A program made the translations under genes and the position numbers. Shown here piece by piece: positions 1-44,150 of a stretch of 64,000 bases of DNA. Source of the stretch: Chlorokybus atmophyticus (taxonomy: Eukaryota; Plantae; Mesostigma and Chlorokybus algae); assembly GCA_009103225.1 (NCBI GenBank), contig RHPI01001946.1:318302-382301 (forward strand), in the 5' to 3' direction. Numbering within the stretch: the first letter of the stretch is position 1; each line of letters opens with the position of its first letter. The notes under the pieces are model-generated. The model made no database searches. It was not told the DNA's origin and saw only the letters and a program-made list of their open reading frames with translations.

Positions 1-121
1 CAAGCCACCCACCCCCCCACCCCCCCACACAGTGCATGCCACACTTCACCTCTGCATGGACACATGCAAGTATGACTGCACCGGCCTCCTCCTGTTTTAC
101 TCTGCTTCATCGTGCTTGCAG

Positions 122-33783: not shown

Positions 33784-36700
33784 ATGAGCACCGCAATGGA
33801 GGGCAGCGGTGAGGGGAGCCAGGAGGACAGGGCGCTGGCGGAGCGGCTGGAGCACCTCACCGTCCGCACTCAGGTGGGTATGCACAGCATAGACAACATA
33901 TGCCGACCCGCCCCACAATTATGTTCACAACAGTAAGCTAAGAGTAAACAGAGCGCCTGTTGCGTGATGAAGCAAGCGTTGCTCCGGTGGCTGGACACCG
34001 GCATTGCACGTTGCAATGGAGAATACCACGCACATACGAGAGGATGCACAGAAGCGGGTGTGATGGTGAAGTTCATGTCTGTCTCTGCCAAACATTAGTT
34101 GTAGCCTTTTCTCTTAACTCTTTGCTGCATTGGATGTGCGATATGAGTCCGTGCACAAGCCAACACTGTCAATCCCCCACTCAGATGTGTCCGTGTGCTG
34201 AGCATGACATGTGCACGCACACAGTAGTTGCGACATACAGAAGTGGGCGCCATCTTTGTCTGCCAAGGTTATCTCGATTGCCCGCTCGTTGTGCGATAGT
34301 GGCGAGCATTGTGCGTGCATGCACGCATCTGCTGCTCTTCAGCTTGAATGTGACGAACACGTGGTAGCCAAACACCGCGTCAGGAAGTGAACATGCACAC
34401 AATGATAACTCGTAACGTACTGAATCTGTCCGAGTGCATGTACACACGCATGCACATGACAGACTGTCAGTTTGTGCGCCCGCATAATTATGCCATGTTC
34501 AGATATGCATGTATGGTACGCTCTTGGACCGCCCGTGGACAAAGCCTTGGTTGATTTGCAGGCGTCCGTGCGTCGAACTAACTCCAGCGATGACATGACC
34601 GTGCCGTCGACATCAGAGCCAATGCATGCATCAATATCATCACCATCCACACCTTCTGCATCCACAACACCATCGCTCTTCCGCCCGACCCACACCGTGC
34701 TGTGGGACTACACCCCGCGCCCGCACTCGCACCATCACAACCACCTTCACAGACACCACAGCGATGCAGACTCGACCGACACAACAACAGCAGCAACATC
34801 ACCATCCCCAACATCATCACCACCGGGCTCGCCCACTCATAGCAGCAGCGAGCATAAGCCACGGTTCAGGCGGTTTTCGGTGTTTCGATCGGCTGCTCAT
34901 AGTAGTAGTGATGCGGATAGTGTGCATGAAAGTGGTGGTGACAATAAGGCGACGACGACGTCATTGTTGGCGGTGGCGCCGTCGTCGCCAAGTCACACGA
35001 CGAGGAGAAGGCACTTTGCGTCGCTGCTCGAGAGCCTTACGCTGCCGGATTCATCAGCAGGTTGGCAGCGTGTGTGTTTGTGGTGTGCGTGCTTGCGTGC
35101 GTTGGTCCTTGCGATGTGGTGCTGATTCAACCAACACACGCACATCAGGTATCCCGGATCGGCTGGCGATCACAAAGGGTTCTCTGTTGCGTCTGGTCGA
35201 AGTGCGCCCTGACGGCTGGTGGCTCGCTCAGCTTCCCGACGGCACCACCGGCCTCGGTAACAGGATTGACTGCTTGCCTGTTAGTAACGCTACTGTTCTT
35301 TAGTGTTTTGTTGCTTGTTTGTTGTTTCTGCTGCCCCATTCATGGACACATTACCATCTCAGTTCCTGGGGCGTACTTGTCCGCATTGAGGAGGGAGCAC
35401 ACGCCGTCGCGCGCATCGGTGAATTCAACAACGACAACAACTAGCCCGCCGACCAATGCGTTGGCGGTGACGTCCAGGGCGCAATCGGTGTTCACGCCGC
35501 TGACTTCAAGAGAAAGGGTAGATGCAACGGCGGAAGCAAAGAGCGGGACAGAAGCAATGCCCATGCTAGGGCGAAGCAACTCCGTGCATGGTGAGAGAAC
35601 ATACATGCGTACGCGCACGCACATGCACGCTGTTGATGAAGGTGTTGACGATGATGGTGGTGTTGATATAGAGTCCGCGTGGCTTCGAGCTCCAGCATCA
35701 ATGAGTGTCGGCTCCTCCTCCTCCGTCCCGGCAGAGCCACCCGCCTCCTCCTCCTCGTCAACAAGTCACGCCCCCGCGGGCATCAGCTCCAACAGCAGCC
35801 GCAATCCCACCTTCACATCCACCACGGGTTCCGTCCCGCCTTACCTCGAAGCCCTGCAGCGCATCGCCTCCTCATCCGCCTCCCACACCAACACGTACCA
35901 GCTCCCGCTGCCGCCAATCCAAGTCGCAGACGGGAAGGGCGGCGCGGGTATAGCCGAGAGCAGCCTGCGCCTGCAGCCACAGAGAGCAGACAACAATGTG
36001 GATGTGGGGAGTAAGAGGGTCCCGCGCGAGTCGGGTGAAGGAGGAGGAGGTGAGAACCACAGTACCGGCAGGCAGGAGAAGTCTTCCCCGCCTCGTCCAC
36101 CCCCGCGTCCTCGAACCCCTTCGCGCACATCACTCGCAGGCACCTCCTTCACCTCCTTATTCTCCCCAACACTATCCCCAACCTCAGACCGCAACCTGAC
36201 GGGTTCATCCTTGTTGGAGTGCTTATGCTTACCGATAGCGTGGGTTCGCCGCGCCCCCGCCTTAACCTTACGCGCCTTGGATGTGATTCGCTTCGCCGCG
36301 TGGAGCCACGCCGCCGCTCAGGTGACTGCCGTGTACGCCATCTACCAGGCGGTGATGGCGGTGATGGCGTACGCGATCGAGTCTCCCGCGCACAGGACCA
36401 CGTACGCGATGCCCGCCGCGGTCTGGACGCTCGTCGGGGCCGTGTGGGCGCTGCACCACGAGCGCAAGGCCAGCACGCACGCAAGAAGAGGGGTTGGAAG
36501 ACTAAGAGCGCTGGGGTGGTCGGTCTTTGCGGCCGGAGCATGCATCAGCATGTTTACGGTAAGACATTGGTAACCACACTGCGTGCGTGCGTGTGCCGCG
36601 TGTGCATCTCTGTGTGTACAGACACACAGATGCATATGTGTGTGTGCTTGTATCTGGGCACTTGTGCACACGCGCATGCGTGTGCATGTGAGCGTGCACG

Positions 36701-39700
36701 AGTGCGTCTTCTCATCAGGTCACTGGTTGTCATTGAACAGAAAGCTGCTGGGATCTTGGCGGCGTGCTGTGCGATGCTTGCGATCGCGGCGGTGTCGATG
36801 GGTGAGGCGCCTCTGCCGGCTTCATCGGGTGGCGGCATCGCCATCGACCCCTTCGATTGGCTCGTCGGCTTCGTCCTCAGGTACAACACACAAATTGATC
36901 AGATCACAAGAGAGTGTGCATGTGTCGACGCCCGCACGCCCGCACGCACGCGTGACAATGTGTGTGCGCGGCAGAGGGAAAGGGAAGAAACCAAAAGTAG
37001 AGGCCGATACAAATGGCGCGGCCAAGTTGTATGCGATGAGGAGCCTCAAGCCTGGTCGGGGTGGTGAATCGATGAAGAAGCGTGGGACAGTATCAGCGGC
37101 ACAACACACCAACAGCGGAAGGAAGGGTTTGTTTACGCGTGCGCGTGATGCCGTGATGGACTTGCGTCGTCACGACGGTGCCGTGGGTCAGCTCATCCTC
37201 GTGTTGGTGTACGTGGCGCTCAACGCGTTGTTCTTCACGCTGGCGGCGGCAAAGTGGCACGTGCGCGCGAAGAAGGCGGGGATGTCGCGCGTTGCATTTT
37301 TAGCGAAGGCGTTTGGCAACTTGCTCAATTTCAATGGAGCGTTCATACTATTGCCAGTACTGAGGCCGTTCCTCGCACTACTCAACCAGAAGTTTGGGTC
37401 GTTCTCATTAGCCAAAGTGCTACCGCTCAACAAGAACCTACTCCTACACAAGGTGAGTAGTGTGTGTGCATGCGTGTGCGTGTGATTGTGATTATCATTG
37501 TTCTTGTTGCTGCTGTTGTTGTTGTTGTGGATGTTGACAATGCGTGGCAGACGGTGGCGTCGGTGATCTTCGTGTGCGTGTTGGGTCACGTGGGCTTCCA
37601 CTACGCCAACTTTGCGCTGCGGCCGGTGGAGACCAAGAAGTCGTTCAACATCCCGCGCGAGCTATGGACGGGGGAGTTCCTCGTCGCATGCAGTGAGTGG
37701 CACTGTTTCTCTAACATGCACGCTGTGTCACACCATGTGGTAACAAGCACGTGCGCGCGTGCCTATGCGTGCGGTCATGCGCGTGGGTCTGTGCGTGCGT
37801 ACGTGCGTGTGTGCGCGTGTGTACGTGCCTGTATGTCCTCGCTTACCCCTGCGTGTGCGTGCAGTGGCGCTGATGTTGTCTGCTGCGGGCGAGCGCATGC
37901 GTCGCGAGCACTACGAGACCTTCTGGGCCAGCCACCAGCTTCTCTGGCCCTCCTTCGCTCTCCTTCTCGCACACGGTCCCGTCTTCTACCTCTGGAGCGC
38001 ACTGCCACTAGGTTGTTACGTTGCCGACCGCCTTGTCGCACGCAGCCGCTGGGGCCTCGTCGGAGGCCGACGCGTGACCGTACTACAAGCCGTGTGGGAA
38101 CAACCCAACGTGTTGAAGCTCGTGTTGTCCAACAAGTGGCGGCCGCGTACGGGGAGCATGTGGACACGCGTGTCGTACATGTTGGGACGAAAAAGGGAGC
38201 TACTTCACTATAAGACGGGACAGTACTTGCGTCTCAATTGCCCGTACGTGTCGGAGTTACAGTGGCACCCTTTCACAATATCATCACCAGCTTCAGATCC
38301 AGACGCACTCACTTTACATATAAAGAGTGCGAGGCCGGGGAGTTGGACCTCGAGCATGCGTGAGCTGTTTGTTGCCCTCATGGGTGACGAGGACGACGTG
38401 AGCTTCACGTCACCCTCGGGTCAACCGGGCACGTGGCGCGGGCCGGGTGGCGTAAGGTTGTTACGTGTGGACGGACCCTACCCGGCACCCGCTCAACACG
38501 TATCTGAGTATGATACAGTTCTACTTGTTGGTGCGGGGATCGGCCTCACGCCATTCGCTGGCGTGCTGCGCGACATCATTGAGTACATATGGCCACATAA
38601 GAATACCACTCACAAGTGTCCGCGACACGTGTACTTCCATTGGGCGTGCCGGCGCGGTGACCTGGCGTCCTACGCGTGGTTCCTGGATCTACTGAAGGGT
38701 CTCCACGCGCGTTACCGTGGTATGGCCACCGCGGGGAGAGGTGTCGTGTTTCAAGTGTACGTGCACGTGACGGGGCCGTGCTCGCCGGGAGCGTTGGCGG
38801 AGGTGCGCGCGGCGTGCGGGGACCACGGGTGCTCGGGAGAGTGTTGTGGGGTCGGAGGGGGAGCGTGTATCGGGGAGTCGTCGCTGGAGCTGCCGAGACA
38901 TACGGCTACGCTCAAGGATATCGTCGCGTTCACGCGAGGTGGGTTACGGCGGTTGTTGTCGTTGTGTATGTGGATGTGCCGAGACTGACATCACTCTCTC
39001 GCAGAGCGGGAGAAGGAGTCGAGGCCGATGCTCACCCTCGCGGACGTCGTGAAGAGGGCCGCCGCCGCCACTGACGAGAGAGAAGCAGCAGCGCAGCGAC
39101 CACAGAGCCCACAAGACAACCCTACCCACGACAACAAGGCTTCATCCAGTCCCGCGTGGCCGTTGTCGCCGGTTCTGGTGATGCGTCCTTTGGAAGAGAG
39201 TGAGAGCGTGAATGAGTCTCCTCGCACGGCGTCGTCCCGTGCTCTGACCGCGCTTGGGGCGTGGGTGGACGACGCCCCCGCGCTGTCCATGAGCGCGTAC
39301 GCGCTGGAGTACGGCCTCGACACACCAAGAGAAGACTACCCGTACGTGCGCACGCGTGCGTGGAGAGTGCAAACGACGACGTTGGCTAACACGTGTGCGT
39401 GCGCGCGTACAGGATGTCTCCCCCTGCGGTGAGACAGAGAGAGGGTGATGGTGGTGCAAAGGGCAAGCTGGCGATGCACTATCTTGCGGACGAGGAGGAG
39501 CAGCGGGACGCACCCGCACACAGCCTCAAACCGGGATGCTGGCAGCCGTGGATACACGTCAGCAGGTGCGTATGACTTCGCCATACGCGCGCGTACATGC
39601 GCGTATGTGCACATGCCTTGGCAACGTTACGTGCCTGCGACACGCACGTGCGCCGTGTGCAAGCGAGGTGACCCTACATGTTGTACAACGTGCGGTGCGG

Positions 39701-40041
39701 ACGATCATGAATGCGTCTCTCTTCGTAAATCCACAGAGGGCGGCCCAAGTGGGACATCGTGTTTGCGGACATACGCCGGCGGCATCGCAACGAAGCCATC
39801 GGAGTCTTCCACTGCGGGCCAATGGGCCACCAGATCAAAGAGGTATGTGCTGTGTTGTGTACTACATGCACTTGTTGGCGGCTTCAACATCAGCAGGTGG
39901 TCGGTCAGTGCTGAAACATGCTCTGTGTGTGTGTGTGTGCGCGCGCAGCTATGCGCGCGGCACACGAAGATAGCGGAGAGCGCGGGGCGCGGGGAAACGC
40001 AAGAGAAGACGATATTCACACCGCACGTCGAGGTGTTTTAG
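33784..40041 (+). CDS. NADPH oxidase (gp91phox/RBOH-like) with N-terminal split SH3 domain and extra TM helices; no EF-hands seen
   Basis: Spliced frame joins SH3 (THTVLWDY...LAITKGSLL...DGWWLAQLPDGTTGLVPGAYL) to the NOX core: AKAFGNLLNFN, heme His pairs H-x13-H and H-x12-H, TG motif, GQYLRL, QWHPFTISS, VDGPY, VGAGIGLTPF, GRPKWD, GVFHCGP, C-terminal HVEVF*. Exons between 33873 and 34562 are uncertain. Confidence 0.85.
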
Positions 40042-43300: not shown

Positions 43301-44150
43301 GCTGTTGTCACACGTGAAACAACATTCTATACATGCCATCACCGTGCGCGTATGTATGCATGCCTACCGTGTTCCAGACGTCTTCAGTCTGGCCTTCAGG
43401 TGGCTCCGCGTCATCTCGCCTGCGCGCATGCTTCCCTCCACCAACGAGCTTGAGTGCCGACAGTCCTGATGACGCCGACGCTGCGGCGATGATGCTCGAT
43501 CCGTTCTCCACAACATCCTTGATCACGCGCCACTCGTCCATCATCTCCACGTCGCCCTCGAGGCCGCCGCCACCGCGCACGCCACCATAGCACAGCACCC
43601 GAGGAAGCGGCGGCGTGTCCGTGTCTCTCGGTGTTGTGGACGGGCCCACGATGAGGAGGGTGTGGTATGCGCGCGCGCGGGGGGGACGGTAGAAGTGCAC
43701 CGCACCCCATTTGCCCGTGCCCGTGTGGAGGGAGAAGCAGTTGTGGAAGTAGATGGAGTCGGCACCGCCGCCGTGGATGAAGATGCGCTTGTCACTGGGC
43801 ATGAGAGGAGCGATTCCATGTCGCATGGCCATGCATGTTGATCAGCGTGTGTGTGTGTGTGCCGTACCCTGCTCCGAGTGTGAACGCTGCATGCCCTGAT
43901 CGCCCTTCCGGCCTGTGCGTGTACGGCTGCACGCTCGTCTCCACCTGCGCAAGCACGCACGCATGGCTGTCGTAATACAATGGAACTGACTCGTCTCTCT
44001 CTGCATCTATGTATGTACACACTTGCTTGCTCGCTCGATTTCTTTTGAGCAGAGGCGCCTCACCTTGTGCCAAACGAGAGTGCTTTTGGCTCCCGCTCCC
44101 GCCCCGCTCGCCGCTGTCGTGGGACGGCTCGTCCCCGTAGCAGGTCGCAT
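40394..44150 (-). CDS. Kelch-repeat beta-propeller protein with charged coiled-coil region and C-terminal IQ motifs
   Basis: Kelch motifs PEGRSGHAA, IFIHGG, PRARAYHT, VMFGGW, PPPRAAHA, SARSGHTA, VYMYGGWDG, GPRAGHTATMVGTRMYVIGG; IQ-like KCARGFLQRKHY and VIVQAHLRGWRTRRHL. An assembly gap (42918-43038) lies inside; start codon uncertain. Confidence 0.8.

Follow-up and report, generated by a model that had tools for sequence, protein, structure and literature searches.

Positions 33784–40041 on the plus strand of a Chlorokybus atmophyticus contig are in all likelihood occupied by one gene, whose product would be a single-chain flavocytochrome b558-type oxidase. An SH3 domain, a p22phox-like four-helix membrane module and an NADPH oxidase (NOX) core appear to follow one another on the same polypeptide. 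All positions refer to the window, the whole stretch of 64,000 nucleotides that was analysed (contig RHPI01001946.1, 318,302–382,301). The features of the gene are:

33784–40041, plus strand: whole coding region; the start ATG and exons 1–4 are the same as in the annotated protein Chlat1/8815 (P0001)
35018–35394, plus strand: SH3 domain, residues 183–243, encoded from late exon 2 through exon 3 into early exon 4
36082–36117, plus strand: proline-rich stretch SSPPRPPPRPRT, residues 473–484, read from the sequence and only putatively a ligand
36262–36830, plus strand: p22phox-like four-helix membrane module, residues 533–661, interrupted by the intron at 36559–36740
37174–38046, plus strand: NOX haem domain of six helices, residues 745–945, collinear with relatives across TM1–6
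38074–38496, plus strand: FAD-binding domain (Pfam FAD_binding_8), with HPFT at 38266–38277
38497–40038, plus strand: NADPH-binding domain (Pfam NAD_binding_6), with GAGIGLTP at 38530–38553, CGP at 39813–39821 and a C-terminal PHVEVF

The 12-exon gene model encodes 1471 residues in a reading frame without an internal stop. Every intron is GT..AG and the frame is kept throughout; in all N-terminal segments, codon scores are higher for the model frame than for both alternative frames. An optional in-frame intron taken from the JGI model (35591–35671) would, if spliced out, reduce the product to 1444 residues. This stop-free model bears out the frame-consistent splicing that the initial annotation had described, from the SH3 exons through four hydrophobic segments into a complete NOX core. 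The four segments, placed there at about 36300–36850, are present, but the module limits are corrected to 36262–36830. In the JGI annotation the locus consists of two adjoining models, Chlat1/8815 (608 residues) and Chlat1/8816 (780 residues; P0002), and two introns bear on the border between them:

Exons 1–6, plus strand: 33784–33873, 34562–35060, 35149–35256, 35363–36558, 36741–36880, 36975–37452
Exons 7–12, plus strand: 37551–37692, 37865–38938, 39005–39341, 39413–39565, 39737–39842, 39949–40041
36559–36740, plus strand: intron 4, not spliced in the JGI annotation, so that Chlat1/8815 ends at a stop at 36571–36573
36881–36974, plus strand: intron 5, GT..AG and phase-compatible, its junction also used in Chlat1/8816

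The NOX half of the gene is expressed and spliced: the introns at 37453–37550, 38939–39004, 39342–39412 and 39566–39736 are confirmed with 0 mismatches by spliced RNA contigs from run X1. The SH3 junction 35256/35363 is visible in an RNA contig of run X3, which comes from a related strain and is about 91% alike. None of the contigs from these two runs crosses 35408–37286, a region that includes intron 5, so that exons 4, 5 and 6 are joined by homology, reading frame and the JGI model rather than by cDNA. A word search with residues 1–130 of Chlat1/8816 found no transcript-derived fragments across exons 5–6, and the sole match in a word search with the 499-residue ORF of exon 4 was the JGI model.

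All four haem histidines of the NOX core are present, as His836-x13-His850 in TM3 and His908-x12-His921 in TM5. Pfam searches matched FAD_binding_8 to exon 8 at 3e-13 (50.2 bits, threshold 22) and NAD_binding_6 to exon 8 at 6e-8, with 33.4–54.6 bits across the pieces tested (threshold 22.2). A hydrophilic insert of about 215 residues (38767–39548) interrupts the NADPH-binding domain, and no hydrophobic segments were found in this insert (residues 1186–1400). The best match of the NOX exon in the PDB is NOX2 (9e-28), followed by NOX5 (2e-22) and DUOX1 (1e-19). The core is unlikely to belong to a ferric or metal reductase rather than to a ROS-producing oxidase, although its Pfam domains are common to NOX and FRE, activity cannot be read from sequence, and extra N-terminal helices are frequent in eukaryotic FREs (PMC3591440). 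Twelve residues separate the TM5 histidines, and TM3 carries H-x13-H-x3-H as in NOX2; among solved structures, NOX2, NOX5 and DUOX are the closest, and the core is joined to a p22phox homologue. Such histidine spacing serves as a rule for recognizing NOX enzymes, and a p22phox partner is known for NOX only.

The border between the two JGI models falls within the four-helix module. A profile built from 52 copies of the module outside Chlorokybus matches residues 539–655 of the spliced model at 32.5 bits, without a gap over the exon 4|5 junction. When Chlat1/8815 is used alone, the match ends at position 105 of 143 with 23.3 bits, and an invariant Glu is lost. Chlat1/8816 agrees with the 12-exon model in exon 5 (from an internal Met), exons 6–7 and exons 9–12, and it also uses the exon 5|6 junction, by which intron 5 connects the end of the module with the linker and TM1–3 of NOX. 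Its start Met sits within helix 4 of the module, its exon 7–8 junction differs, and the start of exon 8 is missing, a splicing that removes TM5 together with its two haem histidines. The start inside helix 4 and the lost TM5 make the annotation unreliable at this locus. Because the annotated split halves a conserved domain, the locus is read as one gene, and the sequence comparisons indicate that one gene has very probably been divided in two by the annotation. Single BLASTP alignments cover residues 535–1199 against the single-chain relative P0003 (6e-93) and residues 535–1210 against P0006 from Rhodelphis (4e-82). With the module gapless across the model border and the protein collinear with single-chain relatives, the earlier proposal of a single protein with SH3 domain, four extra helices and NOX core is upheld.

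The alternative of two adjoining genes, one for an SH3 and four-helix membrane protein and the other for a NOX starting at an internal ATG (36774 or 37073), with the products acting as separate subunits in the manner of p22phox and NOX2, is very unlikely. It agrees with the public annotation and with the lack of a bridging RNA contig, and read-through at the exon 5 donor would reach a stop at 37065–37067, directly before the ATG at 37073. However, such a read-through variant leaves only about 5 bases from the stop to the following start, and the annotated border divides helix 4 of a domain that splicing makes whole. Chlat1/8816 itself begins inside that helix and loses the TM5 histidines by mis-splicing. 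Moreover, the module is on the same chain as NOX in all 56 module-bearing representatives of the family, transcript-derived ORFs included. The one-gene reading corrects the public gene models of the locus.

On the evidence of sequence profiles and structure models, the four extra helices are a homologue of p22phox, the cytochrome b-245 light chain. Searched against the PDB (177,635 sequences), the family profile gave p22phox as its sole match (E 5.9e-15; chains 8gz3_A and 7u8g_B), with profile positions 13–138 aligned to residues 4–141 and all four helices covered. The motifs WA..A, G.Y....G......E...G..R, R....P...T...G and A....E are common to the family and p22phox; in the Chlorokybus module, the conserved Glu599 and Glu653 align with E53 and E129 of human p22phox, and Arg614 with R90. 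The Chlorokybus copy is divergent, as its 32.5 bits against the family profile indicate, and its helix 1 is without a nearly invariant Gly. An AlphaFold model of the module from the relative P0003, computed with the family alignment, has a pLDDT of 94. The top three Foldseek matches of this model are p22phox (TM 0.62–0.69, E 0.01–0.08). In VIA-align, p22phox also ranks first, with Z 13.3–13.9 and 23% identity against Z 11.8 and 9% for the next match, and the best superposition (Z 13.9) has an rmsd of 2.4 over 106 residues. Pfam PF05038 gave no match on Chlat1/8815 at E 0.05, and weak matches in 3 of 67 relatives (best 0.0012). A feature search (Atlas) with the module returned 'flower' as its best match at 0.78, below the useful level. 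No stand-alone p22-like proteins of 78–247 residues were found in a word search with the family alignment, in which candidates depend on shared words.

A generic membrane bundle with a merely convergent likeness to p22phox is highly improbable: four-helix bundles are common and unrelated soluble ones reach Z 10–11.8, the Foldseek E-values are modest and the PF05038 and Atlas results are as given above, but the sequence profile by itself finds p22phox alone in the PDB, end to end, p22phox comes first at 23% identity against 6–9% for other bundles, and the NOX to which the module is always joined resembles p22phox-dependent NOX2 more than any other solved structure. The initial annotation had four extra helices replacing EF-hands. 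The helices are present and EF-hands are absent, with no Pfam match on any piece of the protein tested, but the module is a p22phox homologue and not an anonymous extension; therefore, a covalently joined NOX–p22phox pair would describe the protein better than an EF-hand replacement.

The SH3 domain is recognized by Pfam SH3_1 on the annotated N-terminal protein Chlat1/8815 (23.4 bits, cut-off 22.9), and it aligns with the SH3 domains of 32 relatives. The WW, G, P and Y positions are retained, and the ALYDY motif, whose tyrosines count with WW and P..Y among the canonical ligand-binding residues, is degenerate (LLESL); it is likewise replaced in Rhodelphis. The AlphaFold model of the domain has a pLDDT of 74, and its listed PDB fold matches are all SH3 domains or SH3-containing proteins (TM 0.62–0.82, depending on the target). 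An upstream 'VLWDYTPR' (residues 76–83) had been taken as part of the domain, as a first SH3 strand followed by a 113-residue loop insert; this is ruled out, since the domain is contiguous at residues 183–243.

Between the SH3 domain and the module lies a linker of 299 residues, rich in Ser, Thr and Pro, that contains SSPPRPPPRPRT and has six PxxP motifs, three of them of class I/II. In p22phox, a proline-rich region in the cytosolic C-terminal tail docks SH3 organisers. No PxxP was found in the Chlorokybus tail after the p22-like module, and the proline-rich stretch lies upstream of the module instead. Among 35 SH3-bearing relatives, PxxP occurs in the linker of 21, close to chance expectation, and in the post-module tail of three, which weakens the earlier suggestion of an intramolecular proline-rich ligand.

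The architecture is not peculiar to this alga. The combination of SH3, p22-like module and NOX is found in 34 of 66 representative relatives, and module and NOX without SH3 in another 22. Among the nearest 150 cluster representatives, which span several eukaryotic supergroups, this architecture is more frequent than any other; named sources of relatives are Rhodelphis, Picozoa, Cercozoa, Amorphochlora, Paulinella and Cafeteria. EF-hands occur in 2 of 67 relatives. In the tree of relatives, computed with FastTree, a sister clade has a few matches with an SH3 inside NOX of the Naegleria kind (P0124, P0135). Neither a p22phox–NOX fusion nor a NOX with an N-terminal SH3 was found in a search of the openly accessible literature.

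One review restricts p22phox, p47phox and p67phox to opisthokonts (PMC9421330), and another gives the origin of p22phox as unknown (PMC3591440). We tentatively propose, at slightly less than even chances, that the SH3/p22phox-like/NOX chain is an old, undescribed class in Archaeplastida, Rhizaria and stramenopiles, that p22phox predates the split of the major eukaryotic supergroups, and that the separate animal parts NOX2, p22phox and p47phox may derive from such a chain or have arisen by its fission. If this is true, p22phox was not an opisthokont or amoebozoan invention, and the chain would be a natural 'Rosetta stone' fusion in which the p22–NOX pairing is ancestral. The homologue places p22phox relatives far beyond the animal and fungal lineage to which reviews assign them. 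Since it is fused to a NOX2-like core not only in this streptophyte alga but also in Rhodelphis, Picozoa, Rhizaria and a stramenopile, the p22–NOX partnership would have a much deeper origin.

The predicted chain would begin with a disordered, Ser/Thr/His-rich cytosolic head, followed by the SH3 domain and the long Pro/Ser-rich linker. The four-helix p22phox-homologous module and a short basic linker would lead into the NOX2-like core, with its six helices, two haems, FAD and NADPH sites and hydrophilic NADPH-domain insert. While p22phox stabilises NOX1–4 in trans, the p22-like module may pack in cis on the haem domain and stabilise it. The predicted topology, in which the NOX N-terminus and the two ends of the module are all cytosolic, is consistent with such packing. 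Electrons would pass from NADPH to FAD, through the two haems and to extracellular O2. As EF-hands are absent, control may operate through the SH3 domain, which could recruit a proline-rich cytosolic partner or bind a PxxP of its own linker. For structural and biochemical studies, the protein could serve as a natural oxidase on one chain that needs no co-expressed subunits, and possibly as a testable model for calcium-independent, SH3-based ROS control in the lineage that is sister to the rest of the streptophytes.

The phagocyte flavocytochrome b558, in which NOX2 and p22phox work with the SH3 organiser p47phox, has the same three types of part as the Chlorokybus protein: a NOX2-like core, a four-helix module homologous to p22phox, and SH3 and proline-rich sequence. 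In contrast to the phagocyte enzyme, the Chlorokybus parts are all on one polypeptide in a streptophyte host, the SH3 domain belongs to the membrane protein rather than to a cytosolic organiser, no proline-rich region follows helix 4, and the NADPH-binding domain has a long insert. Fungal NoxA/NoxB, with the p22phox homologue NoxD, NoxR and the SH3 scaffold BemA (PMC9421330), have comparable parts, likened here by description. A calcium-independent NOX with a p22phox-type membrane partner and SH3-mediated assembly may be common to both, whereas the fungal parts are separate gene products and those of Chlorokybus are fused.

Plant RBOH proteins share the NOX core, a long cytosolic N-terminal regulatory region and the green lineage, but the Chlorokybus protein is without EF-hands and has the SH3 domain and p22-like module in their place. 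The NoxD of red algae and diatoms (PMC1940245; PMC3591440) is likewise an algal NOX that has no EF-hands, is predicted to contain four further helices and carries a long insert separating the NADPH sub-regions. Its four helices belong to the dehydrogenase domain, where they follow the first NADPH sub-region and precede the second (PMC1940245), whereas those of Chlorokybus are N-terminal to TM1, a position that rules out NoxD as their explanation, and the Chlorokybus insert is hydrophilic. In Naegleria gruberi, NOX homologues of this protist also have a covalently attached SH3 domain (PMC3591440); there, it is C-terminal, inside the NADPH-binding domain, and the p22-like module is absent.

The oxidase gene was modelled by three-frame translation and splice-site inspection, in a region whose GC-rich, intron-bearing DNA marks it as eukaryotic. 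The model consists of 12 exons on the plus strand, from the ATG at 33784 to the stop codon ending at 40041, and encodes a product of 1471 residues. All introns are of the GT..AG type with compatible phases, and internal stops are absent. When codon usage was scored with the NOX core as training set, each N-terminal segment came out in favour of the frame used here, though weakly. The exon structure, Pfam matches and motifs bear out the initial annotation in placing an SH3 domain, four extra helices and a NOX core in one frame-consistent spliced product.

Features of the oxidase gene and its product
aa 183–243, plus strand: SH3 domain, contiguous, aligning with the SH3 domains of relatives
36082–36117, plus strand: proline-rich stretch PPRPPPRPR, within the linker between SH3 domain and four-helix module
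His836-x13-His850 in TM3 and His908-x12-His921 in TM5, plus strand: haem histidines (sequence motifs)
HPFT, GAGIGLTP, CGP and C-terminal PHVEVF, plus strand: cofactor and C-terminal motifs (sequence)
38767–39548 (aa 1186–1400), plus strand: NADPH-domain insert of ~215 residues, hydrophilic and rich in Ala, Pro, Ser and Glu

Assembled contigs from RNA runs of one study (X1, X2 and X3) were compared with the window. The X1 contigs match it exactly and are spliced, confirming the introns at 37453–37550, 38939–39004, 39342–39412 and 39566–39736, and RNA contigs also show expression of the NADPH-domain insert. The SH3 junction 35256/35363 was seen in an X3 contig that is ~91% alike, in which two differing bases at the joint leave the codon synonymous. 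The X2 and X3 contigs, ~91–93% alike at 35181–35408, 38746–38837 and 39474–39783, have the same splice junctions as the window and probably derive from sibling Chlorokybus strains or species. No RNA contig from the study's runs covers 35408–37286, which leaves the two halves of the gene unlinked by RNA, a gap that weighs little in contig data.

Pfam searches of stop-free pieces of the window detected FAD_binding_8 (3e-13), NAD_binding_6 (6e-8) and a partial SH3_1. Among PDB entries, the NOX exon is closest to NOX2 (9e-28), followed by NOX5 (2e-22) and DUOX1 (1e-19), and the histidine spacings of the core are NOX-like by the pattern of NOX2. A Cys-rich patch, CGDHGCSGECCGVGGGAC, lies within the NADPH-domain insert, which separates the NADPH sub-regions.

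The four-helix module (~135 residues, upstream of NOX TM1) was delimited by a locally iterated profile. An alignment of 52 such modules (A2), with Chlorokybus left out, displays the conserved pattern WA...A, G.Y....G......E...G..R, R...Y.....P.F....T...G and A....E, in that order. When its profile was compared with all PDB sequences, the cytochrome b-245 light chain (p22phox) was the sole match (8gz3_A and 7u8g_B, both E 5.9e-15, positions 13–138 of 143 against residues 4–141 of 195; 8kei_A, 5e-14). The AlphaFold model of one relative's module contains four long helices (pLDDT 94); its best three Foldseek matches are p22phox (TM 0.62–0.69, rmsd 2.6–3.1), which also ranks first in VIA-align (Z 13.3–13.9, 23% identity), above generic four-helix bundles (Z ≤11.8, 6–9% identity). 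The fold by itself is not decisive for a helical bundle; the assignment to p22phox is decided by the sequence profile. The Pfam p22phox model matches only 3 of 67 members, and weakly, which accounts for the missing p22phox label on these proteins in databases.

In the public JGI annotation, the locus is split into two adjacent models that look partly faulty. When the long reading frame of exon 4 was used in a word search, the single protein returned was jgi/Chlat1/8815 in EukProt (P0001, 608 aa), identical to exons 1–4 except for an additional in-frame intron (35591–35671) and an exon 4 donor left unspliced, with the frame running on to a stop (36559–36573). The 81-base GT..AG segment at 35591–35671 (GERTY...GVDI), retained in our model, looks intron-like in composition. 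A HMMER search with exon 8 identified jgi/Chlat1/8816 (P0002, 780 aa) at 99% identity; these matches assign the window to Chlorokybus atmophyticus. This protein starts at a Met within exon 5 (36774), inside a membrane helix, and omits the TM5 stretch with two haem histidines (37693–38013), which relatives keep gap-free. The module profile matches the spliced model at aa 539–655 (32.5 bits), gap-free over aa 631|632, the point at which exon 4 joins exon 5 and the two JGI models meet. In P0001 alone the match ends at position 105 of 143 (23.3 bits), and the rest of helix 4 with the invariant Glu (aa 653, aligned with human E129) is missing. Single BLASTP alignments span model aa 535–1199 against the single-chain relative P0003 (6e-93) and aa 535–1210 against Rhodelphis P0006 (4e-82). 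Read-through of the exon 5 donor is an alternative to splicing from exon 5 to exon 6, but its stop would stand only 5 bases ahead of the next ATG; the exon 5|6 linkage is based on a canonical, phase-compatible splice, the same junction in P0002 and the single-chain layout common to all relatives. The locus is very probably one gene rather than two.

The exon 8 search yielded 3800 proteins at E ≤0.001. An N-terminal part of at least 150 residues ahead of NOX TM1 is present in 66 of the best 150 cluster representatives, nearly all with two to four hydrophobic segments there. With P0001 included, Pfam detected SH3 in 34 of 67 N-terminal parts and EF-hands in only two. The domain-architecture search gave the following counts.

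Domain content of the 66 relatives
SH3, module and NOX: 34
Module and NOX: 22
SH3 without module: 0
Neither SH3 nor module: 10

Named sources include Rhodelphis marinus (two proteins), Picozoa, a Cercozoa MAG, Amorphochlora amoebiformis, Paulinella micropora, a Cafeteria transcriptome and a TSA entry; the architecture, proposed initially as an algal one, is not unique to Chlorokybus. In a FastTree analysis of NOX cores, module-bearing proteins fall within one clade (77 rows, local support 100), with Chlorokybus beside Rhodelphis, Picozoa and a metagenomic protein (support 99). Being only midpoint-rooted and lacking opisthokont references, the tree is indicative and gives no dated history. A sister clade of NOX homologues (among them P0124, P0135 and P0094) lacks the p22-like module. 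SH3 lies in the C-terminal half of at least P0124 and P0135, as in Naegleria proteins (PMC3591440), whereas P0094 has its SH3 match near the N-terminus.

The SH3 domain is predicted to fold as such (pLDDT 74), and the PDB matches listed are all SH3 domains or SH3-containing proteins. It retains WW, G, P and Y, with a degenerate ALYDY, likewise in Rhodelphis. The disordered head contains, at 34700–34760 (aa 76–96), the ALYDY look-alike VLWDY followed by a His-rich run, HSHHHNHLHRHH; VLWDY was rejected as part of the SH3 domain. The tail between module and TM1 is short and basic (median 37 residues), and only 3 of the 35 members that bear SH3 have PxxP there. The proline stretch of the linker resembles the proline-rich core of human p22phox, but lies upstream of the module rather than in a C-terminal tail. 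Of the initial interpretation, the SH3-bearing single chain stands, while the linker stretch is a possible intramolecular ligand whose support does not exceed chance (PxxP in 21 of 35 linkers, roughly as expected from proline content).

No other recognisable domains were found in the ~4 kb flanking the gene on each side; a minus-strand reading frame at 43308–43829, with a weak Kelch-repeat match (E 7e-4, below the Pfam cut-off), may represent an exon of the neighbouring gene.

The analysis establishes the domain order, the homology of the module to p22phox and the completeness of the cofactor motifs. The initial interpretation is partly supported and becomes more specific: the product is a single-chain SH3/p22phox-like/NOX2-like oxidase, misannotated as two genes. 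The p22phox-like module would stabilise the haem domain in cis, NADPH would supply electrons that reach O2 by way of FAD and two haems, and regulation may be calcium-independent, with SH3 acting in partner recruitment or autoinhibition.

This class is widespread and probably new to the literature. No report of a p22phox–NOX fusion, PF05038 or a NOX with N-terminal SH3 was found in the literature searched, and novelty is only probable because that literature excludes most subscription journals. The only SH3 domains reported by Zhang et al. lie within the NADPH domain in Naegleria NOX; the same authors called the origin of p22phox unknown (PMC3591440). Massari et al. confined p22phox, p47phox and p67phox to opisthokonts and described only unclassified NOX-like sequences in green algae (PMC9421330). 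Kawahara and Lambeth discussed p22phox-like genes for a choanoflagellate and, doubtfully, Dictyostelium. Red-algal NoxD carries four extra helices within its dehydrogenase domain (PMC1940245; PMC3591440), at the same place as the NADPH-domain insert of Chlorokybus, which is instead hydrophilic.
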